Sequence record: MN871445.1
DNA: 64,000 nucleotides
Direction: 5' to 3' (one strand)
Shown piece by piece: positions 795 through 48,307 of this stretch. Made by a program: the position numbers and the translations under genes. Numbering within the stretch: the first letter of the stretch is position 1; each line of letters starts with the position of its first letter. A model generated the notes under the pieces. That model saw only the letters and a list, made by a program, of their open reading frames with translations. It had not been told where the DNA came from and made no database searches.

Positions 795-1154
795 ACCCGC
801 TTCTTGTTTCTCGGCAAAGTGGCTACCACCAAACAACCTCACAAATACCCACATGACCAACCAATAACGCCAAGACATCTTTAACCGATACCGGATATTA
901 TCTCGCAATGTAGCATCCGCATCTTTACGCGATACGGTGCCTACCGTGTACATGTAATCGTGAACTGCTGCAGCTGGGAAATAAAAATAATAAGGAGGAT
1001 ATAAGTTTTGGATGAATCGTGGAATGCTCGCCCCATCCGTTACGAACCCCTTTGGGATAGTAACTTCTGGCGTGACATAATCCTCAAGAAACTGAAACTG
1101 GTCTTCTTTTACTAAGTATTTTACCGGCATATCAGCAAACTGAAATTCTGTCAT
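780..1154 (-). CDS. DUF1353 family protein
   Basis: IPKGFVTDGASIPR...AAAVHDYMY...RKDADA signature. Confidence 0.85.
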   Translation of the reverse strand: MTEFQFADMPVKYLVKEDQFQFLEDYVTPEVTIPKGFVTDGASIPRFIQNLYPPYYFYFPAAAVHDYMYTVGTVSRKDADATLRDNIRYRLKMSWRYWLVMWVFVRLFGGSHFAEKQEAGLDIR

Positions 1155-1200
1155 TTTTTATTCCCCCCAAGTAAAGTGTGACACAAAATTCGCTAACCAC

Positions 1201-2356
1201 GTGAGTCTCTTAACTATGAGTGAAACTATTCTTGGTGGTAAGACCTACCACACGGCTGTTTATTATGCACTACAGTCAGAAGTGCTACAGCGTTTTTCTG
1301 ATCGGGTTCTGCCCCTGGTGCGCATGAACAATAAGCCCATAGAAAAACTCCCCTTGGAAATTACGGGGGTCGCTTACGGGCTTATCAACAACATCCCGGT
1401 GTTGTATGTTGAAGTTCATGCCTACGGGAAACCTAAAGACGACGACAACACCAAAGTGGTTATCGTTTATAACCCGGGAAATTTATTGGATTATCTGACG
1501 GATGATGCAATCACTTATAAGGGTGAAGTGTATTATGCCGGCGATAACTTCTGGCGGCTATGTGCCGAAGGAGAACGTCCATGGTAGATTCTATCTCTAA
1601 ACCGTTAGCTCAGGAAGATGAAGCACTCATCCAGGAGCTTTTGGAAAAACAGGCTGCCGAATATATCGTTGAAATAGTAAATGTAGCCGTGCCAGCCTTC
1701 CACAAAAATGCGGTCGTGGGTATGAGTCAAAAAGATTTTGCTCGTAGCCTGGCAGCTATCATGCATGCGGCAGTTTTTCCTCTAATGAAAGAAAAGCAAG
1801 ACAGCGCTCTGAAATTAGCCGATTGCTATGCCATGTTTAACGAACTGGCCGTATTGACTGGAGTAGTGCCTCCAGGTACTCCAGCAACCGCAAACCATCG
1901 CCGAGCTATCGGTGCGTTCACCGCCGCGGTAGAAGCCATCAAACAAAAGGATGCGTCATGAGTCTTGAAGTTACTTATGGGGAATATAAAAAACCCCAGG
2001 TCGGCGTGAAATACCCGGTCCTGATTTGGGAAATCAGCGACGCCGCTAAGCAGTATATGTTTGATCATTTGCGTAAAGTGGTCGCCGTAACTTGTTTTAA
2101 AAACACCGATGATGCAAAACGAGCATTGGATGTTATTGTTATTGACAATGTGGCCACTGGCGAAATAGATGGTAATACAGTCCTGTGGGTCAATTGCTCC
2201 GTTGATGGTGTTTATCGCCGAATACTGGTCAATACCCCGCAACTGAAAACTTTTGAACCTTATTTCATCGACGGCAAAGTGACGGTGGAAGCCACGGCGC
2301 TACTGTCGCCGAGTGGTACCTGGGGGTTCTATAACCTGGAAGATGCACATGAATAA
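1201..2356 (+). CDS. Three overlapping hypothetical proteins (1201..1587, ~1580..1961, 1958..2356)
   Basis: Translationally coupled ORFs (ATGA overlap at 1958), no motif. Confidence 0.6.
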
Positions 2357-2672
2357 AGTCAATATCACTATTTCGGGTCCAGTTGGATCGGGGAAATCGG
2401 CTCTTTATGCAGAATTGGTTGTTGCACTAACTGCATTGGGTTTGCCTATAGAGCATCAGGACCTTAAAGCATGGAATGCTGAAATGAATTCTGGGGCATT
2501 TACTGAAGCTCAGAACATGTTGGAAATGTATAAACCAACTGTGGTGTTATCTGAAACGGTAGATACCGCTATGGTATTGAAACAACAACTTTTGGGTCGA
2601 GCACAATTTCTCCGAGATAAAGGAGAGATCAAAACGCCCGAATTATTAGAACGCGCCGCCGCGGCTTTATGA
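2349..2672 (+). CDS. Small P-loop protein (Walker A only)
   Basis: NITISGPVGSGKS near the N-terminus; paralog at 37654. Confidence 0.6.
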   Translation: MNKVNITISGPVGSGKSALYAELVVALTALGLPIEHQDLKAWNAEMNSGAFTEAQNMLEMYKPTVVLSETVDTAMVLKQQLLGRAQFLRDKGEIKTPELLERAAAAL

Positions 2673-2685
2673 TTATCACTCTATT

Positions 2686-2715
2686 GGTGGGGGAGTTTAC
2701 CCCACCTTTTATGCC
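2686..2715 (+). terminator. Hairpin with TTTTATGCC tail
   Basis: GGTGGGG/CCCCACC stem then TTTTATGCC. Confidence 0.8.
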
Positions 2716-2767
2716 ATTTTTTATATTTGGTTTAAAAACTATGTAATCAATTCATGGGGATTAGAAG

Positions 2768-3484
2768 ATGTCTAAGAAACGCAAAGGCGTAAAAGATGCT
2801 GACGCTAAACGCATCGCAATGGCTAAGAAGCGCGGTGACTGGGTAGAAACTCAGTGTCCGGAAGTATCTGAAATTGAGCCTACTGAGAATAAGGTCGATT
2901 ACGATACTTTCCTTAAAATGCTAGACGCTGAACGTCGAGCTAATGTTGGCGGCGAAGATGAATTCATCTGGAAAGAGGGGTTTAACTACCATCCGGCACA
3001 TCCTGGTATTTGGGTACCGTATAACGGCTGGCGCGTAAAATTCCAACACGATATCCGGTTACGTGATGGCCGGGTGATTGAGAACTGCTACCCCAACGCC
3101 ACCGCCTGGCACGGTAAAGAAGGGCGTTTCACCGATGAAGAGGTCGTTGAAATCAGACTCTGCCCACCTGACGAGCAACTATTCGCTGATTTGGATTATC
3201 TGGTTTCCCACAGCCTGGAGTCTTTCGGGGAGCATTGTTTCCCAGAGATTATCATTTCTGAAGGCGGGGTGATTTCATTCAAACCCAAACGGTATCGTTA
3301 TTTCGAAAAAGGAATTATCGATGAGCGTGGCGAGGTTGCCTACACGCTTTGGGAGGGAACACTTACTGCGGTTGAAGCAGCGGCCAGTAAGGTGTATAAA
3401 AACCTCAGTGAGCAATCTGAACCTTTAGATGAAGCGTTTTCTAAAGTGCTGAACGATAATATTGATGATTTATATTTGGAGTAA
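2768..3484 (+). CDS. Hypothetical protein with basic N-terminus
   Basis: 238-aa ORF with SD; no assignable domain. Confidence 0.7.
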   Translation: MSKKRKGVKDADAKRIAMAKKRGDWVETQCPEVSEIEPTENKVDYDTFLKMLDAERRANVGGEDEFIWKEGFNYHPAHPGIWVPYNGWRVKFQHDIRLRDGRVIENCYPNATAWHGKEGRFTDEEVVEIRLCPPDEQLFADLDYLVSHSLESFGEHCFPEIIISEGGVISFKPKRYRYFEKGIIDERGEVAYTLWEGTLTAVEAAASKVYKNLSEQSEPLDEAFSKVLNDNIDDLYLE

Positions 3485-3489
3485 TTATC

Positions 3490-3978
3490 ATGTTGTTGCA
3501 TATAAGTTTTAAGAATAATTTAGCCGGGAAACTTATTCCGAGGGCAGTTGCTGGAAGTGAGCTAGGTATTTCAACGACATACCCAGAACCAACCACCCCA
3601 CGGGTGTGTTTCGGGCCGACGGTCCTGAAGTGTTTTCAGGCAATATACCCCAACATCTCAGATTTTTTTGAAATTAAAAATTATCCATATATGGATTTCT
3701 ACGTTTACAAAACAAAAACAAATAATCCCCCAGGATATGTACCTAATTCAAAAATAGTAGAAGAACGCTGGGTACATGACGCACATGTTACTGGGGAGTC
3801 CTGGGTAATCGAACCGGTGGTCGTTTATCTGCATCAAAAAGTACGTATTCATAATACAAATAATGTTGATAGTTTACGCTACCATCCTTTTGGCGATCCC
3901 AAGGAACCACTTAGGACACTAGCCCCCAAAACAGCAATAATTGATTACCTGCCGTTAAGTGGAAGTGCTAAATGGTAA
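3490..3978 (+). CDS. Putative ADP-ribosyltransferase-fold protein (His-type first strand)
   Basis: LLHIS...PRVCFG...FYVY...HVTGESW spacing resembles the conserved ART strands; fold inferred by eye. Confidence 0.4.
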   Translation: MLLHISFKNNLAGKLIPRAVAGSELGISTTYPEPTTPRVCFGPTVLKCFQAIYPNISDFFEIKNYPYMDFYVYKTKTNNPPGYVPNSKIVEERWVHDAHVTGESWVIEPVVVYLHQKVRIHNTNNVDSLRYHPFGDPKEPLRTLAPKTAIIDYLPLSGSAKW

Positions 3979-3998
3979 CCCGAGTAATAGGATAAATT

Positions 3999-4613
3999 AT
4001 GTCTAAACTTACCAAAGAACAGTTATACGAGCAGATTCTATTTTTATCTAATGAAGATATCATCTTTGTCAGGAAAAAAGCAGATAGTCCCAAAGGCTTT
4101 CGTTTGTCGGTGATCTGCAATGATATCTTTGCCTATGCCTGCTCCGATTCCAAAGCTATCGATGATAGCCAGATACCGTTAATTCACCATCTGTATAAAA
4201 CGTATTCTTTTTATGGGGTGATTGCCTGGCTGGCATATGTCCGAAAACAAAAACCACTGAAAGTGCACATTACCGAGAATTACAAGCGGGCTTTCCGGGA
4301 GTTAAAGGAGCACAGATTTGCGCTGCCCGAAATCATCGGTGAATCTACTAAGTTAACCGATGAGCTTGACCTTTTATTATTGGCTGATGCTCTAGGTATC
4401 GTTGATTGGTGTATCGAAGAAGGGCAGTGCCCGATACGCCCTCAGTGGGGGCAATATGTATTGTCGAATGGACAAATAATCGACATGCTATTCTCTAAAG
4501 ACTATCGGGCCAGTATAAGAACTAAATCAGAAGTAACCGAGTATGTTTCAATCTATAAACAATCTGGGTTGCAGGCCTGTATCGATAAATTAAACTTGGA
4601 ACAAACATCATGA
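3999..4613 (+). CDS. Hypothetical protein
   Basis: 204-aa ORF, ATGA-coupled to the next gene. Confidence 0.7.
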   Translation: MSKLTKEQLYEQILFLSNEDIIFVRKKADSPKGFRLSVICNDIFAYACSDSKAIDDSQIPLIHHLYKTYSFYGVIAWLAYVRKQKPLKVHITENYKRAFRELKEHRFALPEIIGESTKLTDELDLLLLADALGIVDWCIEEGQCPIRPQWGQYVLSNGQIIDMLFSKDYRASIRTKSEVTEYVSIYKQSGLQACIDKLNLEQTS

Positions 4614-5404
4614 CCAAACAAGAATACATCGACCAGTACGTAGCATTGAATGGCCCCATCCCACCTCATTGTTCGGTTATTCCATCTCCGTTAGGGTGGC
4701 AAATAATCGATGATGATTGCCACGCAAACCTTGTGGTTTACCCGACTAAAGAAAGTATTGAATCATCTATATCTAAATCACTGCTTCCAGAGCACATAAC
4801 CCCGTTCTATCAATTCATGCATGATTATCGGGACACCATCGACTGGGTGTTGTGGTACAACGAAACTGACCCTAATACCACTACGCCATCTTACCACAAT
4901 AGTCGTCATTTGATTGGCGCTGCGTTTATTGCGCATTTATTGAGTGATGGTGACCCTAAATGTATCCAGGCCATGTTCATTCATGATTTTCAACATCCAA
5001 AAGCAGCGAGTGATTTAGATAATATTATCCATTCACTTAGTGTAGCAAAACAATGCGATTATCCTCACGAAATTGATGATGTATTAACGACATTGGTCTT
5101 CGGCACTCAATACAACCCTCAAGACCCATATCCCGCGGTTGAAGATCCGAAGATTGCCTTATGTCGAGATGCTGACCAAATCTACGCTACTATGATGTTT
5201 AATTTGGGGGTTTACTTGGGCCTCGAACATGAAGTAGGAGGTAAGTTGGGTTTGTCTGGGTCCGATTTTCTTCTGCGCAATATGAATTATGTCAGAAATA
5301 TCGGGGATAATCTGTATTTGCCTCAAAGCAAAGATCTACATAAACAATATCGGCAGAAATGCCTGAACGAACATCTCGTATTTTCTTCAATTTATATTAA
5401 CTAA
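4610..5404 (+). CDS. HD-domain metal-dependent phosphohydrolase
   Basis: YHNSRH...MFIHDFQH...CRDAD: the H, HD and D ligands of HD/PDEase folds. Confidence 0.7.
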   Translation: MTKQEYIDQYVALNGPIPPHCSVIPSPLGWQIIDDDCHANLVVYPTKESIESSISKSLLPEHITPFYQFMHDYRDTIDWVLWYNETDPNTTTPSYHNSRHLIGAAFIAHLLSDGDPKCIQAMFIHDFQHPKAASDLDNIIHSLSVAKQCDYPHEIDDVLTTLVFGTQYNPQDPYPAVEDPKIALCRDADQIYATMMFNLGVYLGLEHEVGGKLGLSGSDFLLRNMNYVRNIGDNLYLPQSKDLHKQYRQKCLNEHLVFSSIYIN

Positions 5405-5462
5405 TTTATCGCAGCGGGGATAGATATGAGTATAGTCATCAAGTAGGAAAACGTATAACAAC

Positions 5463-5495
5463 GGGAGGCTTCGGCCTCCCATTATTTTCGCTTTT
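5463..5495 (+). terminator. Intrinsic terminator
   Basis: GGGAGGC-TTCG-GCCTCCC followed by a T-rich tract. Confidence 0.85.
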
Positions 5496-5526
5496 TTATT
5501 TTGATTAAATAAAACAATTACACCCT

Positions 5527-5534
5527 TATATTAC
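5527..5534 (+). promoter_or_regulatory. phiKZ-type early promoter box TATATTAC
   Basis: Exact motif, intergenic, A-rich upstream, 44 nt before the ATG at 5578. Confidence 0.7.
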
Positions 5535-5577
5535 TTACGGGACTAAGTAAACCACCCCATAACTGAGGATTTTTAAA

Positions 5578-6039
5578 ATGGCAGATTGCAGCATTGGTCC
5601 AGTATCCACTCTCCCAGGGTCTATCCGTGCAGTTCCTGTAGGAACCGAGTGCGATGAACACCCAGGGGTATTGGCCGTAAAACGGGTTCAAGGCGAAACT
5701 GATTCTTTTGGGTGTGAGTATTTGGATATGTGTCAGGAGTGTTACGACAAATATAAGGAAGAAATGCGCAACGTGGATAACTCAGGCACTTGTGATTGGT
5801 GTAAGAAAAGTGCCGATCAAGTGTTTAACCACAGGGATATAGAAGAAGGGAGTTGTGGGCGGGTCTATCAAGTATGCCAAGCATGTATCGATGCCGAAAA
5901 GAAAGAATGGGCTGAAGAACGTGATTGCCTGGATGATGATGATGAGTGGTGGGATTCTCGGGACTTGGATGATGAATTAGGTCCAGAAGATTTTGAGGAC
6001 TTCGACGATGACCGGTATGCTGAGCGGCTCGGAGAATAA
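5578..6039 (+). CDS. Cys-rich putative zinc-binding protein with acidic tail
   Basis: CDEH, CQEC, CDWC and CQAC pairs; D/E-rich C-terminus. Confidence 0.65.
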   Translation: MADCSIGPVSTLPGSIRAVPVGTECDEHPGVLAVKRVQGETDSFGCEYLDMCQECYDKYKEEMRNVDNSGTCDWCKKSADQVFNHRDIEEGSCGRVYQVCQACIDAEKKEWAEERDCLDDDDEWWDSRDLDDELGPEDFEDFDDDRYAERLGE

Positions 6040-6042
6040 TAA

Positions 6043-6633
6043 ATGAACAATGATGTAATTTCACTGATTTTGAGTGTTAACGAACATATCGACGCACGTC
6101 GGTCAATTCAGAAACACAGTTCATTACTGGACAACAATCTGTCATTTGACGGTCAGTGGCCAGTGACGAAAGTGGACCGGGATAAGATGATAGAGACCAA
6201 CACAAGCACTACACTGTGGGTAGTGGTGCTTTCTGGTGAAAGGTTGCGGATATTATCTCCAACTGTCGCAGATGCCATGGTCGAATTAGAAACCAGGTAC
6301 CCCGAAATCCGTAGCCAAATTCCAGATTTTGATCTTGTTTCATTTGGTGAAAAAGCGCGGCGGTTTCCAGGACATGTAGCTCTGCATTATGGTTGCTATC
6401 CTCAACCTGAGTTAGATGCTGAGTTACTTGCAACATTGGGTTGGTTGCAATGCCCCGATTACCCGCAAGATAAACTCTACTTTGGATACCAAACCACCGA
6501 AGAGTTTATTGCGGGCCTCGCAGAAACGCGTGCATTAACCAACATTACAGTATACTCCGCTGGAGGTTGTCATCGGCATTGGTATGGCACCGATCTACCT
6601 ACAGTCGTCGATGGCTATATTAACCAGGAATAA
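6043..6633 (+). CDS. Hypothetical protein, family A copy 1
   Basis: Shares LRI.(S/A)PTV..AM..LE.RYP....QIP.FD with 7178..7762. Confidence 0.75.
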   Translation: MNNDVISLILSVNEHIDARRSIQKHSSLLDNNLSFDGQWPVTKVDRDKMIETNTSTTLWVVVLSGERLRILSPTVADAMVELETRYPEIRSQIPDFDLVSFGEKARRFPGHVALHYGCYPQPELDAELLATLGWLQCPDYPQDKLYFGYQTTEEFIAGLAETRALTNITVYSAGGCHRHWYGTDLPTVVDGYINQE

Positions 6634-6637
6634 AAAA

Positions 6638-7093
6638 ATGAGCGCACGTCTAAATTTTTATAGCATCCCCAAAAATAAGGTTCCTCAGAAGCAACTCGAG
6701 GCCCTAGTATTGGACCAGTGTGAATCCGATGTAGCAAAACATAGCAAGGCCACTTTTGTTGACCTCGTTATTCTCGAGGACGCAATGGATGAGTTGGATG
6801 ACACTTACATTGATTGGTACACCGGCCTTCACCCGTATGGCCAGGCCAGGCAAGTGATATCGGCATTCATGTCAGACAAAGGCATTACTGGTAGTATCTA
6901 TAATACCAGCATGGTTATGTCCAAGCAGTTAGTCACCGAATTGCTTGATTATGTTATCACTTCGCCGCTATGGGGCGTAGATAATGATTTTTATCTATAC
7001 CACGAAAAAGAAGGAATTGAACTGTTTTTACAACACATCGTAAATAAACATGACTTTGATGCCGCCTATTTCTTTTATGTCTACGGTAGGTAA
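6638..7093 (+). CDS. Hypothetical protein, family B copy 1
   Basis: Shares LDQCESD, IYNTSMVMSK.LV.ELL and HDFD..YFFY with 7769..8203. Confidence 0.8.
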   Translation: MSARLNFYSIPKNKVPQKQLEALVLDQCESDVAKHSKATFVDLVILEDAMDELDDTYIDWYTGLHPYGQARQVISAFMSDKGITGSIYNTSMVMSKQLVTELLDYVITSPLWGVDNDFYLYHEKEGIELFLQHIVNKHDFDAAYFFYVYGR

Positions 7094-7138
7094 CGGCATA
7101 TCTCCTGTCTCGTTAATTAACGAGACAGTTTTTGTTTT
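7094..7138. terminator. CGGCATA + perfect 24-bp palindrome + T tract
   Basis: CTGTCTCGTTAATTAACGAGACAG (7105-7128) followed by TTTTTGTTTT. Confidence 0.75.
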
Positions 7139-7177
7139 AATGTTTTATGACATAAACAAGTTTAAGGAGATACGAAA

Positions 7178-7762
7178 ATGAATGATTTAGTTGTTTGTGA
7201 GTTTGTTGTTGTCGTAAAACCGTATACTGATAACTACTACGACATTGATGAGCATGTTCAGATAATAACGTGGAATGAAGCGTGGGGTCGCAAATGGAAA
7301 GTTCCCCAGGAACATAAAGATAAAATGCTTGAATTAAACAGTGCCGTAGTGCTATTTATTAGCGCAGTTAATAGCCCAAAATTTCTACGAATTCATGCTC
7401 CAACCGTGAAGACGGCCATGGAATTGTTGGAAGAACGATATCCGAAAGTACATGCACAGATACCTTCTTTTGATGCGGATAAATTTGAATCTATCGGTGC
7501 AGCGTGTAAGGGGTCATCCAATTTGTCTTACTTTTTTATTCCAGAGGATAATGACGATGATAATATTCTGTGGCTCCTTCCTGATGACATGGATGAAGAT
7601 GATTATGTCGGTAATTTCCCCAACATTGGTGCATTTATTGCCGCAGTAAAAGAAAAAAGAAAGGTTCTATGCATTCATTGCTACCCCGACACTCCGGTAG
7701 GAAGTTGGTCCTATTATGGCTTCGATTTTAACGAGCTTATGAACCACGTTATTAAGGAATAA
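7178..7762 (+). CDS. Hypothetical protein, family A copy 2
   Basis: Paralog of 6043..6633. Confidence 0.75.
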   Translation: MNDLVVCEFVVVVKPYTDNYYDIDEHVQIITWNEAWGRKWKVPQEHKDKMLELNSAVVLFISAVNSPKFLRIHAPTVKTAMELLEERYPKVHAQIPSFDADKFESIGAACKGSSNLSYFFIPEDNDDDNILWLLPDDMDEDDYVGNFPNIGAFIAAVKEKRKVLCIHCYPDTPVGSWSYYGFDFNELMNHVIKE

Positions 7763-40244: not shown

Positions 40245-40856
40245 GCGTTTAAACGCATAGGTACCAATGCCATCGCGACCCAAATCAGTTTCAATGGTAT
40301 TATGCTCCACCAAATCAAAACCTTCACCACCCATAAACCGAATAAGGCCGGCATGAGTGAAATACCAGATATGTTCATCTTTGCGGTAATGGATGGATTT
40401 AGTGATGTGTTCTGCATCAGTAAAAATAGGGATGGATACGAATACCCAATCTGTTGCTTGGGCAAGCGCAACATCAGGTTCATCGATGTGCTCTAACGCA
40501 TCCCAAAAGGTCAATGCGTCAATAGGGGATTGATAGAAATCGTGAAACTTATTCTGATCAGCTAACCAAGCGATACCTGCCGGATTAACATCAAACCCAA
40601 CGGCTCCTTCGCAGTTGTCTACGAATTGGCCCGCCCCGATACCCACATCACACACTGGACCGGACCAGTACTTCTTAACTAAAGCCACCCGGGCTTTAGT
40701 TAGGGCGTCGCCCATCGGAGTAGCTGCGCGTTCACGATAGCGTGCGAAGTATTCTGCATCATAAGGGCGTGCATCTTTGGGTACTGGATAATGTCCGATA
40801 CCCAGCTCAGGAAAGAAAGAAAGTTCGGCGTTGAGTAACTCAGAGACCTTGCGCAT
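40236..40856 (-). CDS. Class I SAM-dependent methyltransferase (small-molecule/sugar type)
   Basis: VCDVGIGAGQF (motif I), GFDVNP, DALTFWDALEHI; no DPPY/NPPY or PC motif. Confidence 0.88.
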   Translation of the reverse strand: MRKVSELLNAELSFFPELGIGHYPVPKDARPYDAEYFARYRERAATPMGDALTKARVALVKKYWSGPVCDVGIGAGQFVDNCEGAVGFDVNPAGIAWLADQNKFHDFYQSPIDALTFWDALEHIDEPDVALAQATDWVFVSIPIFTDAEHITKSIHYRKDEHIWYFTHAGLIRFMGGEGFDLVEHNTIETDLGRDGIGTYAFKRKK

Positions 40857-41730
40857 TTAACCACCCGTTAATTTTTCCAGTGACGTTACTGATGTATTTG
40901 TTGCACGCATGCTTCATTTCATAACACATACAGTACTTGTCAGGATAAACAAACAAGCAGTTGTGTAAGCTCATAATTCTTGGGTCGGTGATTTTAGTGT
41001 GATGATTACAACCACCGCAACCACCCCCTAAGAAAATAGTGGGCCGACGATAGGCAAAGGCAGCTTGAGATATTAAGCAAGGCCCAGTCACCACAATATC
41101 AGCGCGTTCCACTAAGGCCATCAATTCAGTGATTGATAGCTCCCCTTTATGTATCTTTAAATGTGCGAATGGTTCCACATCTGGAATCCACTCCGCACCC
41201 GGTTCCAAGTCGGCTACGCTGATACAGAAATATCCGCGAGCCTGCAGCGCTCTAGAAACCTCATCAACATGCTTATTGAGCGGCCCTCGTGATTGGTGGT
41301 GCCACTCTTTACGTTCGGTAGTCGGGCGTATCAGTGCAAGTTTCTTGATGTTGCCCGGAATGTATTTGTTGGGTAATTGAAAGTGAGGCATATCCAATGC
41401 TACAGGTTCCACGCCGAATTGGCGACGACCGGCAGCGAACACAGAACCATTCTCCAGATCTTTAATCCCATAAAAGATTTTCTTCGTGATAAGTTTCAGG
41501 TCACGGGGAACCTCTTCATATTTAACCTGCGTCCTGCTTTCATTTTTCTTTTGTGTACGCAGAGTAGTGTTCGCTCTAACAAAATGAACATTAGGGATGT
41601 CCTGATAGAATTCTGGGATAGGAGTTTGAATCCAGACCTCATTGCCGGACATTACTAGCCGCTTAATAAATGGGCGCTGAAGTAGTTGATCGCCGATGCC
41701 CTGCATTCCATTGATTAGGTATCTTGCCAT
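40840..41730 (-). CDS. GT-B fold glycosyltransferase, GT9 (heptosyltransferase)-like
   Basis: N-terminal QGIGDQL; C-terminal LSITELMALVERADIVVTG...AAFAYRRPTIFLGG. Confidence 0.72.
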   Translation of the reverse strand: MARYLINGMQGIGDQLLQRPFIKRLVMSGNEVWIQTPIPEFYQDIPNVHFVRANTTLRTQKKNESRTQVKYEEVPRDLKLITKKIFYGIKDLENGSVFAAGRRQFGVEPVALDMPHFQLPNKYIPGNIKKLALIRPTTERKEWHHQSRGPLNKHVDEVSRALQARGYFCISVADLEPGAEWIPDVEPFAHLKIHKGELSITELMALVERADIVVTGPCLISQAAFAYRRPTIFLGGGCGGCNHHTKITDPRIMSLHNCLFVYPDKYCMCYEMKHACNKYISNVTGKINGWLNAQGL

Positions 41731-41748
41731 GGTAATTACCCTCTATTG

Positions 41749-42321
41749 TTATAATCGAATACTCGAGGACCATAACTCATCCTCTAATGTATTAGTTTTA
41801 AATGTTTTCAATTCCGTATATCGAGAACAGTTAATGACTGACATAGTTCCAATGATGTCTGGGACTTGGTTAAAACAGCCATGCCATTTTTCGATATCGC
41901 TGTCTTTAGGATTCGAAAGGTCATCGATATGGGGTCCGTGCCAATGTAGCCCATTAGCCAGAGAACAATCATAACCCAATAACAATACTCTCTCAGCACC
42001 GAGATTGTGAGCCAAACAAATAGCGCGCATGCCTGAGTTGAATGGTCCTTTTGCGGGTATTGGCATGTACTGAATATCTGGGTAATCTTTTATTGTGGTT
42101 CTGATAGAAGTCCATTTCACCATCGTATTAGGTACCTCATCGTGATATTTGCGCCACCATGTTAAATCTCCGGCATAGATGTGGTCACAAGTAGGCACTT
42201 TACGCCAACTATTATTGACCGCGATAATCGGATAATTAGTTCGCATGATGAGATGGCAGTCCTCATCAGTGAGTGATGGCCCTGAGGCTACACAAATGAA
42301 CGTCTTTTTATCGAGTGGCAT
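41749..42321 (-). CDS. MptE/DUF115 (Maf/sialyltransferase-related) protein
   Basis: ICVASGPSL, IIAVNN, IYAGD, FNSG..AI.LA..LGAERVLLLGYDC, HWHG, INCS. Confidence 0.72.
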   Translation of the reverse strand: MPLDKKTFICVASGPSLTDEDCHLIMRTNYPIIAVNNSWRKVPTCDHIYAGDLTWWRKYHDEVPNTMVKWTSIRTTIKDYPDIQYMPIPAKGPFNSGMRAICLAHNLGAERVLLLGYDCSLANGLHWHGPHIDDLSNPKDSDIEKWHGCFNQVPDIIGTMSVINCSRYTELKTFKTNTLEDELWSSSIRL

Positions 42322-42391
42322 GAGATAAGCCTTACAGTAGTGGACGTTAAAACCTATATCATTTTTCCATTAAACAAAACAAACATGGAAC

Positions 42392-42408
42392 TATATTACT
42401 GATTGGAC
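42392..42408 (+). promoter_or_regulatory. Early promoter box TATATTAC(TGATTGGAC)
   Basis: Exact motif in the divergent intergenic region. Confidence 0.72.
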
Positions 42409-42438
42409 ATATACTGCGTATATCCGGAGGTATTTAAC

Positions 42439-43702
42439 ATGAGCGAAAATAACGTTGTTCCTTTTACTGGGAAGAAATTGATGTCCAATTACCCCGCAAC
42501 AACCATGAACAGTGAAACAACTGACCATATGGCCAGGCTGTCATTCAGCATGACTGCGATGCAATCGTCGTTACGCCGGAAGCCAAACGTACTTCAGTAC
42601 GATGATTGGGTAAAAACCATGATTGGTTCCACACAAATGGTTAGACTGGGTGTCCTTGACGTTCGCTTGCGTAACCGGTTCTTTGACGCATTCGAATCCG
42701 GTGGATTGACACTAACCCGATGGTTAAACGAGGCGCGGTATCTCAGTCAACTACCATTGTGCGATATCGTAGTGGATTATAGTCACTATGATGAATTTAA
42801 CGGTTGGGTTGATGTAGACCGACCAACAATGCGGTTTAATCTCGGTAAAGGGGTTTCTATTATCCAAGAATCTTTTTTGTTGGGGAAAGAATCAGAATAT
42901 CCGGAAACTGCACTTGAAGATTACCGTAAATCAAATGTAGGGTGTGTGGAGATTGATGATATCTGGGATTCATGTAATGCCGACCCGAGGGGCTCGATTA
43001 TTGAACCGCGGTTAGTAGAGCAACTAGCGGACTGCTTTTATCTGGATGCGCTGGCGTGTGGTGGTGGGTGGGAAGTAGAAAGAACGGAGAAAGAAACCAC
43101 GTTCTGTTTTTTGGAAGCCATCACCCCGAAGCACATCAAGCGCTGGACATTATCGTTTAACAACGAATACTACACTCTTTTCTTAACTGGGGATATTTAA
43201 AATGAACACTTCTAATTGGTCGGCTTACCTGCATGATGACCGTGTCGTGATTGAATCACCATCAGGATGCACATACGACATCCCAGCATCTGATACCAGG
43301 TATACGTTGTCATTAGTCGCCGGCGGGTACCTCTACCTCCTTACCACCAAACCCAGTTTCACCACACGGCATCTACTCGTGCCGGCAGGTAACCTTAGCA
43401 TTGAACTATTCCGGGACATGACTTATTTGCAGGGTGCGTTAAATCAGTACTTTACCCCTGATGAAGCCGAACTGTTTACCGGTGTTCAAACAAAACCCAA
43501 AAAGTACATGCGCCTGCCTAATAGCGGTACGCTTGTCTATTTGGTGGACATTTTATCTGTGAACAGATTGGTTCATGGTGACCACAACGGAACCGCGCTA
43601 CTTATTAAATACCCCATCGGTGAAATCATTATTGCCTGCGACACTATCGAAAACGCTGTCGCTGATGAACGTGCGCTGACAGAATATCTGCTTTCGTTGT
43701 AG
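42439..43702 (+). CDS. Two hypothetical proteins (42439..43200, 43202..43702)
   Basis: GGAGG SD at 42426; coupled. Confidence 0.7.
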
Positions 43703-43713
43703 TGGGGGCGTTT

Positions 43714-44157
43714 ATGCCAATTATGGTTTATGCTGGTTCGGTATTTGATGTACCCGCACAGACGGTCATCAATACGGTTAACTGTGTGGGGGTAATGGGA
43801 AAGGGGTTGGCTAAGGAATGTGCTATTCGTTTTCCAGAGATGGAATCAATCTATAAAGATAAATGTCGGCGTCGGGTGTTATCCCCAGGTAAGTTATACC
43901 TGTATACTGCCGGTACGCCGTGGATACTGAACTTCCCAACCAAAATACATTGGCGCAACCCTTCTCAGATAGAATGGATTGAATCTGGGTTAGCGACGTT
44001 ACGTAGGGTTTACCCACAAATGGGACTAACTTCGCTGAATGTTCCGCAGTTGGGTTGTGCTAACGGTGGGTTGGCATGGCCTGAGGTAAAAGACCTAATC
44101 TATCTATATCTAGATTTGCCTGATTTGCAAGTGAACATTTGTCTAAACAACCTTTAG
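43714..44157 (+). CDS. Stand-alone DarG-like macrodomain (ADP-ribosylhydrolase)
   Basis: VINTVNCVGVMGKGLA, ILNFPTKIHWRNPS, VPQLGCANGGLAW. Confidence 0.92.
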   Translation: MPIMVYAGSVFDVPAQTVINTVNCVGVMGKGLAKECAIRFPEMESIYKDKCRRRVLSPGKLYLYTAGTPWILNFPTKIHWRNPSQIEWIESGLATLRRVYPQMGLTSLNVPQLGCANGGLAWPEVKDLIYLYLDLPDLQVNICLNNL

Positions 44158-44165
44158 GGGCTGCA

Positions 44166-44726
44166 ATGAAAGAATATTTAGTTTACCGTGGAGAACATGG
44201 TTCTAAGGCAGTGCTGATGACACATCTGGGTTCGCTAACTTTTGTCGATGACCGCACTGTAGCTGAGCGTTACGCCAGGGTACCTAACCAACGGCAATAT
44301 TCCGGCCTCAAAGAGCCTAAACTCATCACCGCGAAGGTCACCATTAACCGACCTTTCATCAACACCCCTGATGATTCGTTTATCGAATTTAAAGCCATCC
44401 GGGCGCATTTAGGTCCAACCCACGCAATCAGAATCGCCCGTAAGTTTGCTGATAGTATCGTGGAGACGGATGCTTGGGCCGTATTAGCCAAGAAACGCCG
44501 AGTCAATACCTTGGATGAATATTTGGCGCTACCCGATGCGTCCACCCAGAAACTCTGTATGCAAGCATATCGGTATTTTGACGACCCTGAAGAAATAGAG
44601 GTGTTGGTGAAACATCATTTTGATGGGGCTATCTATCGAGGGTCTGGCGAAAGCATGGGCTGTGTTGAGTATCGTCCATTTAATCGAGACAGCATCATGG
44701 TGTTGGTAATATCTTCGGTGAGGTGA
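44166..44726 (+). CDS. Putative ADP-ribosyltransferase-fold protein (polyvalent-protein ART-like)
   Basis: VYRG, GSLTF....VAERYA, VTINRPF, FDGAIY, CVEYRPF; the longer frame (44139) overlaps the macrodomain gene. Confidence 0.6.
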   Translation: MKEYLVYRGEHGSKAVLMTHLGSLTFVDDRTVAERYARVPNQRQYSGLKEPKLITAKVTINRPFINTPDDSFIEFKAIRAHLGPTHAIRIARKFADSIVETDAWAVLAKKRRVNTLDEYLALPDASTQKLCMQAYRYFDDPEEIEVLVKHHFDGAIYRGSGESMGCVEYRPFNRDSIMVLVISSVR

Positions 44727-44728
44727 CC

Positions 44729-45187
44729 ATGTACGGTGTGATAGACGGTATCTTTGAAGGGGATACACTCAAAGCGCGGCTTTATGACGAAGATCATGAT
44801 CATGAGTTTTTCGATGTGTGCATCGTCACTAAAACGGACTTTTCTGAAAAAGACTGGAACGAGATTATGATTGCTCCTGAAGCCGGATTCATTTTTCTGA
44901 TAGTTAACAATAAATGCATATTGAGGAGAAAAAACATGACTACTGAAACTAAAACCACCGAGACCAAATACATCACACTTCCATCGGGAAAGACCGTATG
45001 TCTGGATAAGATTCTGGTCGTTAGTGAAGTAAAGAAAATAGAAGGCCTCTGCACTGAGTCTTATATTTTCCACATTCACTATAGCGGACAAACCTCACCG
45101 GTAGTGATGTCGTATGGCGATAATAAATACATCGCTAGTATGGACTGTGCCGCATTATCTCGTAAATTAACCGGAGAAAAAGAATAG
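44729..45187 (+). CDS. Hypothetical protein, family E copy 1, fused to a second domain with its own RBS/ATG at 44936
   Basis: YGVIDGI N-terminus like 45188 and 45580; GAGGAG-N7-ATG in frame at 44923-44938. Confidence 0.65.
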   Translation: MYGVIDGIFEGDTLKARLYDEDHDHEFFDVCIVTKTDFSEKDWNEIMIAPEAGFIFLIVNNKCILRRKNMTTETKTTETKYITLPSGKTVCLDKILVVSEVKKIEGLCTESYIFHIHYSGQTSPVVMSYGDNKYIASMDCAALSRKLTGEKE

Positions 45188-45583
45188 ATGAAATACTACG
45201 GGATTGTTAACGCGATAAATGACGGCATGGTCACATCCACCATCTATGATGCTTATAGTAATAAGCAGTACCGTTTTGAATGTCAGTTATCTCGGTTTAA
45301 AGACCCAACTCAGGTAATTCCCGGTTATTTGTTTGTGCGGAGAAGAACCGCTGAGGTAGATTATTTTGAGTGGTATTGGTCCTGGAGGGCACGGGAGCTG
45401 TACGCCCCAATCAAAGCCTGCGTCACAGTAAAACCGTTAGAAGACTACGTGATGACCAATGAAGTCATGGCGGAGATAGACGAATCCATCAAATCAGGGT
45501 TTGTGGAAATTCCAGAGAACATAAATACAGTGGAAGAAATGGATGCTTGGCTGACGGGACTTAATCTTGGGGACAGTAAATGA
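45188..45583 (+). CDS. Hypothetical protein, family E copy 2
   Basis: MKYYGIVNAI...PGYLF...YFEWYWSW. Confidence 0.72.
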   Translation: MKYYGIVNAINDGMVTSTIYDAYSNKQYRFECQLSRFKDPTQVIPGYLFVRRRTAEVDYFEWYWSWRARELYAPIKACVTVKPLEDYVMTNEVMAEIDESIKSGFVEIPENINTVEEMDAWLTGLNLGDSK

Positions 45584-45900
45584 GATATTACGGAATCATT
45601 GAAAGCATTCAAGGTGATGAATTCACTGCGGGTGTTTACTCCATATCTGGAGATAAGATCGTCGCATTTACGAGCAAACTGAGGGTTTTTAAAGGGGTGT
45701 TAGTTCCCAGGGTTGGTGCTGCATTTTGCCGAATAAATGGACTCACTGAAGATTATTATGAAGTCAGCCTATATTGGTCATGGTGGAACCAAAGAAAACT
45801 TGATACTACACCCAAAACCCCACTCCCCGATTGGTTACAAAAACACATGGTCGATATGGCGTTGGACGCGTATTTAAAAGATATCCCTAAAGGTCAATAA
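45580..45900 (+). CDS. Hypothetical protein, family E copy 3
   Basis: MRYYGIIESI...VGAAF...LYWSW. Confidence 0.72.
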   Translation: MRYYGIIESIQGDEFTAGVYSISGDKIVAFTSKLRVFKGVLVPRVGAAFCRINGLTEDYYEVSLYWSWWNQRKLDTTPKTPLPDWLQKHMVDMALDAYLKDIPKGQ

Positions 45901-46020
45901 TTACTACCCTACGCTATAATGCGATAAAAAGAAAAGTCGGCCCATGAGCCAGACAGCCGTACGTCTTCAGGACGCTAAACACTCAATAATAAATAGTCTA
46001 AACCCATGAGGATTACAAAT

Positions 46021-47205
46021 ATGTCATATGAAAGTCATTTCCTATCAGAAGCAAAACTGGCCTGCGTTGCCAAAGCAGACCAAGAGCTGGTCTTGAAGAT
46101 GCTGAAACCCATTTCAGATGAGGGGCATTCTGGCGGCAGTATGAGCATTTTTATCCAGTGGTTGGAAGACTGGGCTAATAACCCACAACCCATCACAGAT
46201 AAACGCAGTATGCTCTACCCCGTACAGGAATCGGTCAAAGGTTTGCCCTACGAGGATTTGAAACGGATTGCCGGGTACGTTTATAAGACTTGCGCCTTTG
46301 AACCACTTACTCCATTGACTGGGGTAGATAGTGAGTGGATAGATCATGGAGATGGCTACTATCAAAATCGCCGTTATTCTAAAGTATTTAAAGAAGGGAA
46401 AGACGCCACCCCATATTGCATTGACCGCGTGGTTTGGTGCTACCCTTACAATGATTTCTCTGGTTGGGGTGGGTGTACCCGCGGGGGTGGTTTAAGCTCT
46501 AAAGATATTACCTTCCCGTACGATCCAGCGGCTCCAGAAAATGCTACGGAATATAAATATTTCTTAGCGGATGACTGGCGTGAAGAACTTCCCGTAGAGA
46601 TACCACCAAAAGCATGGCTAAAATGGCAGCGTCAACGGTACCATGCCGGTACTGACCTCACCACGGGGAAACTGCGCCTGGGCGTCGTATGTTTGGGTGA
46701 TGTACGCCTTAACGAAATAATCATTGCCTACGCTGCAGTTAAAACACACATTGAGGTTACAGAAGGCCTCACTGTGGAACGCGCAATTCGTAAGCTTGGG
46801 TGGGTATGGGACTGCGACGATGAAACCTGGTTGGATTGTGGTTGTACCACCATAAAAACTGCGGATCTCGCTCAAAAGGTTATTTATCTACTAACGACAG
46901 AGCCGAAAGATATCGCTGGTTATGCGGTGCAACAAACTAAGATCCTGAAACCGGGGAAAATGTATCAACGATGGTCTCACTATCGGGATGATTATTTTGG
47001 GTGGATGCCGAACTCGGATAAACCTACCCCCATCTATGTGGAAAATGATAGAATTATCACCGGCGATCATGATGACTATTTGTTCCAACAACGTCGCAAA
47101 TATGGCTATGCACACCCCAAACGTAAAGAGCATACGCTTTCATCAGAGAACATAATAGCATGTTCTGGTGGCCTACCACCACTGGATGCTGCCGACCCGG
47201 CATAA
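46021..47205 (+). CDS. Conserved phage hypothetical protein (GHSG...PLTPLTG...YQN.R motif)
   Basis: EGHSGGS, FEPLTPLTGVDSEW, YQNRRYSKVFK. Confidence 0.75.
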   Translation: MSYESHFLSEAKLACVAKADQELVLKMLKPISDEGHSGGSMSIFIQWLEDWANNPQPITDKRSMLYPVQESVKGLPYEDLKRIAGYVYKTCAFEPLTPLTGVDSEWIDHGDGYYQNRRYSKVFKEGKDATPYCIDRVVWCYPYNDFSGWGGCTRGGGLSSKDITFPYDPAAPENATEYKYFLADDWREELPVEIPPKAWLKWQRQRYHAGTDLTTGKLRLGVVCLGDVRLNEIIIAYAAVKTHIEVTEGLTVERAIRKLGWVWDCDDETWLDCGCTTIKTADLAQKVIYLLTTEPKDIAGYAVQQTKILKPGKMYQRWSHYRDDYFGWMPNSDKPTPIYVENDRIITGDHDDYLFQQRRKYGYAHPKRKEHTLSSENIIACSGGLPPLDAADPA

Positions 47206-47218
47206 CAAATAACCCCAC

Positions 47219-47240
47219 AGGGAGGGCGATTGCCCTCCCT
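47219..47240. terminator. Hairpin
   Basis: AGGGAGGGC-GATT-GCCCTCCCT; CGGCATA 20 nt upstream. Confidence 0.65.
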
Positions 47241-47527
47241 CTATACCCTGGAGATAAATATCATGAATATTCGACAACGCCGTAAACGCATTGCCCGCTC
47301 ACGTAAAGTCGGAGGGTTCGTACTGGACTTTGACGACGGCACTACATTACAAGTTCCTATCTTCGATTCACGGATAGCCAAAGAAGGTTGTGATGTCGCC
47401 ATCGCAAAAGCGGTTAAATCTGCGTTACTGCTGGATGCGCTACGTAAAGGCGCAACAGGCATTATTGATGTGGAAGTAAACGTCCAAGGTAAGGACATCC
47501 AAATTGATTGGATAGGAGAAGTTTAAT

Positions 47528-48307
47528 ATGCCAGATGTGATTGCCCACCCAAATAAAGGCACTGTTGAAATCTCAGCTGATGTCTATGAAGCTTTACGTG
47601 CGTACCATCAGGGTCGGGTCTTAGTGCCCGAACGCTTGACCGACTATCGTAAACAAAATGGACTCAAAATTGGTGAATTCAGTCAGGCGATTGGGTACAG
47701 TTGTATATCGGCCATTGAGCGACATGGCACCCAACCCAGCTCCCCGGTGATGGACCGACTTCAGGTAGTTTACCCTAAAGCGAAGTTCGTGGTGGAACTC
47801 CCTGAACTCTCACCCCAAAAAAGACAAAACCCATGTATTGATGTTGATAAACTAGCACGACATTTGAAACGGAAATATCCCGGGTATAGTCGAAATGAAT
47901 TATGCGACATTACTGGCCTCGCCATGTCTCAGTTATTTAAAGTACTGGCTGGGAGCTACCGGGATTTTAAGCCGGCGACCGTTGGAACGGTATTCCGGAA
48001 CCTGGGGTTGGTACCTGAGCGTTATATTCTCGGGGTTATATTGCCCGAAAAAATGACGTCGGAGTATGCCGACATTCAGGAATCCGCAGCGAAAAAAGGA
48101 ATTACAATATTTCAGGAATTCACCACCACCGTGGATGGAGTGATGAATGACCTAACCACTGATTTGGGTCTCTCATCACAAATCATCCGATACTACCAGG
48201 CCGGTAAGTCTTTTCCTCTGCTGTCAAATTACTTGAAGATTTGTGAGTACTATGGATTACCTTTTTATTACTTCGAACAAGATTGGTTGAATTACAATTT
48301 GCGGTAA
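47528..48307 (+). CDS. Protein with three Cro/C1 (XRE) helix-turn-helix-like repeats
   Basis: YRKQNGLKIGEFSQAIG..ISAIER...P; YSRNELCDITGLAMSQLFKVLAG; LTTDLGLSSQIIRYYQAGKSFP...LKICEYYGL. Confidence 0.75.
   Translation: MPDVIAHPNKGTVEISADVYEALRAYHQGRVLVPERLTDYRKQNGLKIGEFSQAIGYSCISAIERHGTQPSSPVMDRLQVVYPKAKFVVELPELSPQKRQNPCIDVDKLARHLKRKYPGYSRNELCDITGLAMSQLFKVLAGSYRDFKPATVGTVFRNLGLVPERYILGVILPEKMTSEYADIQESAAKKGITIFQEFTTTVDGVMNDLTTDLGLSSQIIRYYQAGKSFPLLSNYLKICEYYGLPFYYFEQDWLNYNLR

Follow-up and report, generated by a model that had tools for sequence, protein, structure and literature searches.

The window analysed here, a 64,000-nucleotide stretch of sequence record MN871445.1, matches Serratia phage KpHz_2 at 100% identity and Klebsiella phage Eowyn at 83%. 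KpHz_2 is a 270-kb relative of Eowyn within the Chimalliviridae, the family of nucleus-forming jumbo phages in which Eowynvirus is placed, which confirms the phage origin that an earlier note had attributed to this DNA. Two adjoining genes are considered (Table 1): ORF1, from an ATG at 43714 to a stop codon at 44155-44157, and ORF2, from an ATG at 44166 to a stop codon at 44724-44726. They are separated by exactly 8 nt (44158-44165) bearing an AGGGG Shine-Dalgarno-like run, and both ORFs, their spacing and all the motifs quoted in the earlier note were recovered in the sequence. This short spacing is not a special property of the pair, since the + strand between 42403 and 45900 is densely filled throughout, every gene there being spaced by -4 to +11 nt. 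A scan of positions 42200-47600 for sigma-70 promoters and terminators revealed nothing above shuffled expectation, with a tool that does not cover chimallivirus promoters.

Outside the pair itself, a gene starting 1.3 kb downstream encodes an N-terminal domain matching Tad3, the type I Thoeris inhibitor family (6.7e-27, 94 bits for a cut-off of 27, residues 6-147). This gene is also present in L013, another sequence of the Eowyn clade, and fits with a counter-defence neighbourhood. Our literature search retrieved neither functional or expression data for genes of Eowyn or KpHz_2, nor a paper connecting chimalliviruses with an ADP-ribosyltransferase (ART).

Table 1. Position of the two genes, of the segments of ORF2 and of the Tad3-like neighbour in the window
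Feature	Coordinates	Strand	Basis
ORF1, orphan DarG-type macrodomain, AdfM-like, predicted DNA ADP-ribosyl glycohydrolase, 147 aa	43714..44157	+	Pfam Macro, PADLOC DarG, PDB, homology to PhiKZ gp104
ORF2, predicted stand-alone ART-PolyVal-like ADP-ribosyltransferase, 186 aa, R-Y-D(+E) variant	44166..44726	+	phrog_8642, homologues, AF2/Foldseek
ORF2, N-terminal half of the ART core, residues 1-74	44166..44387	+	Alignment to the canonical ART-PolyVal repeats of Dfl-JY45; AF2 secondary structure
ORF2, helical insert, about residues 75-150, ~70 aa	44388..44615	+	Not in canonical ART-PolyVal repeats
ORF2, C-terminal part of the ART core, residues 151-186	44616..44723	+	D153-G154 opens a strand; E168-Y169 on the next strand
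Neighbour gene, N-terminal Tad3-like domain (type I Thoeris inhibitor family)	46006..47205	+	Pfam PF25185 Tad3

ORF1 is a macrodomain of the DarG type, as the earlier note had proposed. Its motifs are NTVNCVGVMGKG at residues 20-31, NFPTKIHW at 73-80 and LGCANGGLAW at 113-122, and it matches Pfam Macro (1.5e-8) as well as the PADLOC DarG profile (2.2e-49), of which it covers positions 3-141 of 329. The NCBIfam antitoxin_DarG model is also matched (2e-47), with a score of 162 bits that remains under the cut-off of 250 because the C-terminal half of DarG is absent from ORF1. Among solved structures, sequence matches were obtained with 5m3i (8e-32), 5m31 (3e-29) and 7omu (2e-26). In the alignment, N23, K30, T76-K77 and H79-W80 of ORF1 stand opposite N22, K29, T79-K80 and H82-W83 of TaqDarG, so that the catalytic residues are retained.

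A published precedent from the same family is given by AdfM, the gp104 of PhiKZ, a macrodomain that counters DarT2 in this chimallivirus (Morgan et al., Cell Rep 2026, PMC13309987). AdfM strips the ADP-ribose deposited by DarT2 off DNA, enters the phage nucleus and confers protection from DarTG2; its nuclear localisation was also shown in PhiPA3 and Asesino, and N23 is the residue that was mutated in that study (PMC13309987). ORF1 is homologous to PhiKZ gp104 (PHIKZ104; tblastn 9e-21, 36-37% identity over 86% of the query), and N23 and K77 are invariant in an alignment of five chimallivirus macrodomains including gp104. The proposal, raised in the earlier note as an alternative, that the macrodomain acts as an anti-DarTG2 factor is thus reinforced by homology, and the glycohydrolase activity of ORF1, its role against DarTG2 and its import into the phage nucleus would be those of PhiKZ AdfM.

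The fold of ORF2 was assessed by AlphaFold and Foldseek, the check named beforehand in the earlier note, and the ART fold proposed there was retrieved. The AF2 model, built on 74 diverse homologues, reached a pLDDT of 95.5 and a pTM of 0.89 (an alignment of 5 sequences gave a pLDDT of 37), and its Foldseek matches are exclusively ART folds, with low TM-scores to solved ARTs (0.33-0.49). The best match in the PDB is the ejection protein of cyanophage A4 (9k3a_B, 9.6e-6), followed among solved structures by MbcT (6fkg, E 1.7e-3, TM 0.44) and further by tankyrases and AcrIF11; in BFVD, proteins named ART-PolyVal-like were matched at 1e-6 to 1e-4. Sequence searches of the PDB with ORF2, either as a single sequence or as a profile, returned chance matches only, among which those to IMPDH (0.26) and to a designed helical bundle (profile match on the helical insert, per-domain i-E>1) were dismissed. 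In protein space, ORF2 matches phrog_8642 at 2.7e-37, and a search of 1.84 billion proteins returned 368 representative homologues for it at E<=1e-3. The family matches and features of both ORFs are not due to chance.

ORF2 belongs, on the basis of sequence comparisons, to a divergent and previously undescribed subfamily of ART-PolyVal. The ART-PolyVal family (PF18760), to which the N4-like ART domains are assigned, is found in polyvalent proteins of phages, which are large, combine many domains and are injected from the virion, and displays an H-Y-D active site, with the His on strand 1 and the Asp on strand 5 (Iyer et al. 2017, PMC5512222). ORF2 has no Pfam match of its own at E<=1 and its assignment is therefore transitive: the homologous segment of Tunturi_5 gp225 matches PF18760 at 3.1e-11 (44.6 bits for a cut-off of 31.2), as do 32 of the 74 stand-alone homologues at E<=0.01, the best of them at 1.7e-10. 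The N-terminal half of the core holds strand 1 with Y7-R8-G9 (the YRG motif at residues 7-9), S23-x-T25-F26, a helix with Y36-A37, then P40-N41 and D70, while FDGAIY (152-157) and EY (168-169) lie in its C-terminal part. Between them, the AF2 model places helices at 75-82, 84-93, 95-99, 102-111, 116-120, 134-138 and 141-149, and the canonical repeats align solely to profile positions 3-79 and 145-193. D153 stands opposite the Asp of their G-[YF]-D-G motif and R8 occupies their His column, which across the subfamily contains Arg in 151 of 155 domain instances and His in only 3. With Arg in this column and both Y36 and D153 kept, ORF2 is therefore filed as a member of a variant subfamily and not as a typical ART-PolyVal.

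Conservation in this subfamily is concentrated on the predicted site, R8, Y36, D153 and E168 being each kept in 94-99% of 155-161 domain instances (Y36 in 159/161, D153 in 160/161, E168 in 153/160), together with G9 (154/155) and F26 (161/161). Three comparisons gave a pN/pS of ~0.16-0.37, indicating that ORF2 is under purifying selection. The ARTs of the Eowyn clade are basic (pI 7.8-9.1), whereas the remaining family is acidic (median 5.15), a shift that could reflect a change of target, nucleic acid being one possibility. The 153 family representatives comprise 75 proteins of <=300 aa and 52 of >1000 aa.

The R-S-E layout read by the earlier note from the motifs of ORF2 does not hold as ancestry: classical R-S-E descent was ruled out, since the canonical relatives carry His in the R8 column, and no Pfam, NCBIfam or PDB sequence match to R-S-E families was obtained. 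The R, S-x-[ST] and E of ORF2 are best explained as a convergence on an H-Y-D scaffold, and the ancestral catalytic acid is the Asp of FDG (D153) instead of the Glu of EY. A DarT-like reading of ORF2 was likewise abandoned: PADLOC gave nothing for DarT at E<=0.1, and the best 50 Foldseek matches in the PDB do not include a DarT structure.

The sequence and model of ORF2 point to a stand-alone ADP-ribosyltransferase from the ART-PolyVal lineage that is probably active. A competing view is that of a degenerate ART fold which would only bind NAD+, ADP-ribose or a partner protein, as a sponge, a decoy or a structural element, because the catalytic His of the family is lost. The general replacement of this His by Arg would agree with it, as would the missing direct Pfam match, the low TM-scores to solved enzymes and the nature of the best solved match, a structural ejection protein whose paper reports no ART activity. 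However, an Arg on strand 1 is the usual NAD+-binding residue across the R-S-E clade (Iyer 2017, PMC5512222), the ancestral Tyr and Asp are 99% conserved and the additional Glu is fixed at 96%, a pattern typical of a selected active site that, along with the low pN/pS, makes the loss of transferase function unlikely.

The linkage of the two genes was surveyed through tblastn matches, annotated regions and contigs encoding homologues. The macrodomain gene directly precedes the ART gene, at 8-9 nt, in six sequences of the Eowyn clade (the window, KpGz_1, Eowyn, L013, L014 and L015), and synonymous divergence reveals recombination breakpoints between ORF1 and ORF2. Both genes occur in five other chimallivirus genera without being adjacent: in Machinavirus, Erskinevirus and Seoulvirus they are on the same strand at 9-11.5 kb from each other, and the distance is ~45 kb in PhiEaH1 (Iapetusvirus) and ~95-97 kb in 2050HW and Haymo (Moabitevirus). 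Conversely, PhiKZ, PhiPA3, 201phi2-1, Agricanvirus and Goslar encode the macrodomain and gave no tblastn match to ORF2 at E<=1e-3. On seven metagenomic contigs with stand-alone ORF2 homologues, the sequence on either side contained no macrodomain, nor was a DarG-like macrodomain fused to any of the 153 ORF2-family proteins, including those of >1000 aa. In Machina, EaH2 and SPLA5c, the ART homologue is flanked by genes of ~190 aa; their reading as an array of paralogues was rejected, a single ORF per locus matching the ART profile. The adjacency is thus a genus-level arrangement. The earlier note had itself named an absence of linkage in related phages as an argument against its proposal, and this is largely what the survey uncovered.

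That proposal was a self-protecting module of reversible ADP-ribosylation. In the version weighed here, similar to a toxin and its antidote, ORF2 would ADP-ribosylate a substrate and ORF1 could reverse the mark; the upstream macrodomain would limit the ART or confine it in space, for example by shielding the phage DNA, and would act against DarT2 as a secondary function. Several observations fit with a functional link of this kind: the adjacency was kept in all six Eowyn-clade sequences despite the mosaic recombination that shuffled the block, a macrodomain is encoded in all six chimallivirus genera that bear the ART (6/6), the two genes share the same strand in the three genera with intermediate distances, and the ART of the Eowyn clade is unusually basic. 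However, the self-protection model is rendered less likely by the loss of linkage outside this clade, most pronounced in Iapetusvirus and Moabitevirus, by the seven stand-alone homologues devoid of a nearby macrodomain and by the lack of fusions. Moreover, the macrodomain is widespread without an ORF2-type ART, and an independent function has been demonstrated for it (AdfM, PMC13309987). ORF2 has no relationship to DarT, which alone is known to write the thymidine-ADPr bond that DarG-type macrodomains are described as reversing, and the close spacing is common to every gene of the block. We consider a true writer/eraser module improbable, and a phage "DarTG-like" module looked better founded from the adjacency on its own than it proved to be.

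The explanation that we favour, with a probability of roughly 60%, is that ORF1 and ORF2 are two separate NAD+/ADP-ribose conflict genes which adjoin each other in a packed accessory block. ORF1 would hydrolyse the ADP-ribose that host DarT2 attaches to thymidines in single-stranded DNA of the phage, by means of a catalytic lysine of the DarG/TARG1 type (K77) together with N23, and this removal would allow replication and packaging to go ahead. ORF2 would bind NAD+ via R8, in replacement of the family His, Y36 and D153, with E168 as a subfamily-specific residue, and would transfer ADP-ribose onto a host or defence macromolecule, its helical insert likely being a target-recognition element. For phage ARTs, such a transfer is established in T4 Alt/Mod and is the proposed action of the ART domains carried by injected polyvalent proteins (PMC5512222). 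The pair is probably co-transcribed with the whole block, without forming an obligate toxin-antidote unit.

In a far more speculative scheme, which we regard as very unlikely, toxin and antidote would be separated by compartment: the basic ART of the Eowyn clade would mark nucleic acid in the host cytoplasm, such as host DNA or that of competing elements, and the AdfM-like macrodomain imported into the nucleus would clean the phage genome. If true, the phage would possess a weapon resembling DarT but derived from an ART scaffold of unrelated origin, and its nucleus would separate self from non-self. Finally, the view of ORF2 as an NADase or NAD+ phosphorylase akin to MbcT/RES toxins, consuming NAD+ with no transfer of ADP-ribose to a macromolecule, which could for example starve NAD+-dependent host signalling, is suggested by the second rank of MbcT among the solved structures and by the homologue of an inhibitor of Thoeris (whose signal derives from NAD+) in the neighbourhood, but is highly improbable given that ORF2 does not resemble the RES/MbcT families in sequence, that its family occurs in polyvalent proteins beside many macromolecule-modifying domains (Iyer 2017, PMC5512222), and that hosts deplete NAD+ against phages while jumbo phages tend to restore it.

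Under the favoured reading of two separate conflict genes, the role of ORF2 is modelled on T4 Alt, ModA and ModB, phage mono-ARTs devoted to host takeover which also carry a strand-1 Arg; these belong to the R-S-E clade, whereas ORF2 comes from the H-Y-[ED] clade and has no detectable sequence relationship with them. With ART-PolyVal, ORF2 shares the ART fold, the conserved Tyr and the Asp of G-[YF]-D-G, its profile aligning directly to the canonical repeats, and differs by the strand-1 Arg in place of His, the additional E168, the S-x-[ST]-F motif and the helical insert. Many members of its subfamily are, as in ART-PolyVal, embedded in proteins of 1000-4600 aa, in contrast to the stand-alone ORF2. 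To our knowledge, no ART-PolyVal domain has a measured activity or a known target, and the ORF2 subfamily offers a compact and well-folding entry point, at 186 aa, for learning what is modified by these very common ARTs of phages.

ORF1 shares its macrodomain fold and active site with the DarG of DarTG systems (TaqDarG 5m31, MtbDarG 5m3i), but DarG is a protein of ~330 aa with a C-terminal half that binds DarT, which is missing from the 147 aa of ORF1. DarG also has an adjacent cognate DarT gene and ORF1 has none, its neighbour being of the ART-PolyVal lineage; DarT (DUF4433), the writer of the mark erased by DarG-type macrodomains, has only the ART-superfamily fold in common with ORF2. The gene order in DarTG systems is darT-darG, reversed relative to that of ORF1 and ORF2, where the macrodomain comes first. 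G119 of TaqDarG is replaced in ORF1 by an Ala which is also found in PhiKZ AdfM. Beyond its genus, the closest phage relatives of ORF1 are found in the E. coli phages DE15 and phiEco32-like and in Agricanvirus (42-50%). Unlike ORF1, PhiKZ gp104 has no ART neighbour, but both are stand-alone DarG2-like macrodomains of ~150 aa from Chimalliviridae, with the catalytic Asn (N23), the Lys and an identical LGCANGGL loop in common. ORF1 would thus extend AdfM-type counter-defence, not new in kind, to chimalliviruses of Klebsiella and Serratia, and such an orphan macrodomain may help to predict which jumbo phages withstand DarTG2.

The window is 100% identical to Serratia phage KpHz_2 (MN871445.1, 270 kb, host Klebsiella pneumoniae) and shares 96% identity with KpGz_1 and 83% with Klebsiella phage vB_KvM-Eowyn; Eowynvirus is a genus of the Chimalliviridae, the nucleus-forming jumbo phages. 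The macrodomain gene (ORF1) and the following gene (ORF2) belong to an almost gapless run of + strand genes from 42403 to 45900, and no broken gene was met in their region. The motifs and the 8-nt gap reported for them in the earlier note were all recovered; this spacing is typical for the entire block and therefore does not by itself mark out the pair. A site scan, uninformative for this type of phage, gave no terminator-like site on the + strand within the block. The last two block genes are tandem paralogues (30% identity, E 1e-10) with a 4-nt overlap, and the gene preceding them has in common with them only an N-terminal M-x-Y-G-[IV] start; no family match in Pfam or PHROGs was found for those of the three that were tested. 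Upstream of the block, two divergently oriented genes (40840-42321, - strand) encode a protein of 190 aa, which gives a weak MptE-like match and is annotated 'alpha-2,3-sialyltransferase' in Eowyn, and one of 296 aa with no assigned function; in Eowyn and in the metagenomic contig L013, a methyltransferase is located beyond their counterparts.

Genes of the block and downstream Tad3-domain gene, in window coordinates
Feature	Position	Strand	Remark
Block gene	42403-43200	+	
Block gene	43202-43702	+	
ORF1, macrodomain	43714-44157	+	147 aa
ORF2, predicted ADP-ribosyltransferase (ART)	44166-44726	+	186 aa
Block gene	44723-45187	+	
Block gene	45188-45583	+	
Block gene	45580-45900	+	
Tad3-domain gene	46006-47205	+	399 aa; residues 6-147 match Pfam Tad3 PF25185 (6.7e-27, 94 bits, cut-off 27)

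Judging by its sequence, ORF1 is a macrodomain of DarG type, as previously proposed: it matches Pfam Macro (1.5e-8), PADLOC DarG (2.2e-49) and NCBIfam antitoxin_DarG (2e-47), and its closest solved relatives are the DarG macrodomains 5m3i of M. tuberculosis (8e-32) and 5m31 of T. aquaticus (3e-29), the 406-aa macro protein 7omu being also among the best. The antitoxin_DarG score nevertheless stays below the cut-off (162 versus 250 bits) since ORF1 spans no more than the N-terminal macro half of the 329/338-position models. In the PDB match alignment, N23, K30, K77, H79, W80 and A116 of ORF1 stand opposite N22, K29, K80 (catalytic), H82, W83 and G119 of TaqDarG, all of them either ADP-ribose-binding or impairing the protein when mutated (Jankevicius et al. 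2016, PMC5179494). The Ala replacing G119 is also found in PhiKZ gp104, whose LGCANGGL loop is identical to that of ORF1. This protein, AdfM, an orphan DarG2-like macrodomain imported into the nucleus, strips DarT2-made ADP-ribose off DNA and shields chimalliviruses from DarTG2, with homologues in about half of them (PMC13309987). Considering the match to PHIKZ104 (9e-21, 37% identity, 86% of ORF1 length) and the invariance, in an alignment of five chimallivirus macrodomains that includes PhiKZ gp104, of the catalytic Lys and of N23, mutated in the AdfM study (PMC13309987), ORF1 is best filed as an AdfM-type orphan DarG macrodomain, and by analogy would share the activity and localisation of AdfM. 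In the Streptomyces phages Frankenweenie (OQ921725.1, 163881-164243), Quantum and JustBecause, the macro tblastn match falls in a gene annotated 'ADP-ribosyltransferase'; this may reflect a wrongly annotated macrodomain, or else an ART fused to or lying beside a macro in these actinophages.

ORF2 itself has no match in Pfam, NCBIfam, PADLOC or PDB sequences, its sole family match being phrog_8642 (2.7e-37, function unassigned). HMMER, run over all 1.84 billion representatives, yielded 368 relatives at E<=1e-3, the best 150 of which, with three close relatives, form the family set (n=153), composed of 75 proteins of <=300 aa and 52 of >1000 aa, the longest reaching 4605 aa. Two annotated phages, Tunturi_5 (gp225, encoded directly upstream of the portal gene) and Dfl-JY45, harbour the ORF2-type domain inside giant proteins bearing PF18760 (ART-PolyVal, the ART domains of phage polyvalent proteins). 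The ORF2-homologous segment of gp225 matches PF18760 over positions 1-137 of 140 (44.6 bits, 3.1e-11), and 32 of the 74 stand-alone homologues also give a match to this model. The ART fold suspected earlier was recovered in the AlphaFold2 model (pLDDT 95.5, pTM 0.89; 74-sequence alignment), whose Foldseek matches are ART folds: the cyanophage A4 ejection protein 9k3a_B (9.6e-6), the NAD+ phosphorylase toxin MbcT, tankyrase and PARP catalytic domains, AcrIF11 and, in BFVD, many viral proteins named ART-PolyVal-like. TM-scores against solved structures are modest (0.33-0.49), and the assignment is made on the consistency of these matches together with sequence homology. In the giant proteins of Tunturi_5 (2402-6190) and Dfl-JY45 (260-7423), canonical H-type ART-PolyVal repeats coexist with one R-type, insert-bearing domain in the same polypeptide, and gp225 carries in addition a nucleoside 2-deoxyribosyltransferase-like domain at its N-terminus. 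The closest solved structural match, 9k3a_B, a pre-ejectosome protein of 1071 aa, may contain an unremarked ART-PolyVal-like domain, none of ADP-ribosyltransferase type being mentioned in the corresponding paper (PMC12002296).

Polyvalent-protein ARTs have a His in strand 1, a Tyr in strand 2 and an Asp in strand 5, and are placed in the H-Y-[EDQ] clade, separate from the R-S-E Alt/Mod enzymes (Iyer et al. 2017, PMC5512222). A profile alignment of the ORF2 family with the canonical repeats of the Dfl-JY45 and Tunturi_5 proteins puts R8 in the column of their His, Y36 in that of their conserved Tyr and D153 in that of the Asp of their G-[YF]-D-G motif; Y36, although helical in the model, would be the published 'Tyr in strand 2'. 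The R-S-E layout initially described is fair as sequence appearance but not as descent: from these columns, ORF2 is probably an H-Y-D enzyme that gained its Arg convergently, and its R-S-E-like look is possibly convergent too. The canonical repeats align only to residues ~1-70 and ~140-186, so residues ~75-150, entirely helical in the model, constitute an insertion; E168 is not kept in these repeats. Among subfamily domain instances, conservation is strong at R8 (151/155, His in 3), G9 (154/155), F26 (161/161), Y36 (159/161), D153 (160/161) and E168 (153/160), with Ser at position 23 in 125/160 and Ser or Thr at position 25 in 144/161. Together with a pN/pS of about 0.16-0.37 in three comparisons within the Eowyn clade (the window, KpGz_1, Eowyn and the contigs L013, L014 and L015), this argues for a functional active site and makes an inactive ART fold improbable. 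A DarT identity was rejected, as PADLOC gave no DarT match at E<=0.1 and the top 50 Foldseek PDB matches contained no DarT; the lineage is instead ART-PolyVal.

The most likely picture, with a probability of about 0.6, is that ORF1 and ORF2 are two independent effectors, neighbours within one genus. The order macro first, ART adjacent with an 8-9 nt gap holds throughout the Eowyn clade, including the three contigs (ARTs 78-87% identical), but not in the other chimalliviruses with both genes: they are on the same strand at 9.3 kb in Machina and SPLA5c, about 9 kb across record ends in SaP7, about 10 kb in pEa_SNUABM_43 and 11.5 kb in phiEaH2, and are separated by about 45 kb in PhiEaH1 and about 95-97 kb in 2050HW and Haymo. 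A true writer/eraser coupling, favoured by the presence of a macro in all six ART-bearing chimallivirus genera, is opposed by these distances, by the absence of macrodomains from the available flanks of stand-alone ORF2 homologues (38-41% identity) on seven metagenomic contigs, several of them short, and by the lack of fusions to a DarG-like macrodomain (0/153). It is further opposed by macro-bearing PhiKZ, PhiPA3, 201phi2-1, Agricanvirus phages and Goslar, without any ORF2 match (tblastn, 1e-3); no ART was found among the neighbours of PhiKZ gp104. Synonymous divergence of the window from Eowyn, L013 and L015 is mosaic across accessory genes: relative to Eowyn, pS is 0.20 for the macro and 0.55-0.84 for ORF2 and other neighbours, whereas relative to L013 it is 0.20 for ORF2, 0.35 for the macro and 0.14 for a 131-aa gene, which with the ART forms the segments nearest L013. 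This indicates recombination breakpoints between adjacent accessory genes, which have split the histories of ORF1 and ORF2 even while adjacent; conversely, that the adjacency outlasted recombination speaks for coupling, as does the basic pI of the Eowyn-clade ARTs (ORF2 and its relatives P0001-P0004, 7.8-9.1, versus a median of 5.15 in 74 stand-alone members), a shift specific to this clade in an otherwise acidic family. On balance, coupling appears unlikely, and a role of ORF2 as an NAD+-consuming enzyme very remote. The earlier interpretation is partly supported: for the nature of both domains, not for a DarT-like ORF2.

Next to these two presumably independent effectors, the Tad3-domain gene, 1.3 kb downstream and kept in the Eowyn clade (Eowyn gp014, L013), has an N-terminal Tad3 part, followed by ~250 aa without family assignment. 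Phages use Tad3 to inhibit type I Thoeris through binding of its TIR protein ThsB (PMC13728456). With this gene, the block resembles a counter-defence region built around NAD+/ADP-ribose biology, which fits ORF2 as a further conflict effector. The published AdfM work now accounts for the macrodomain half of the pair, ORF1 being an additional member of the already known AdfM/orphan-DarG group, and the ORF2 subfamily offers a tractable case for study: not DarT-like, it would be a new variant of the known ART-PolyVal, differing from the canonical domains by its stand-alone state, its Arg in place of His, its extra Glu and its helical insert.
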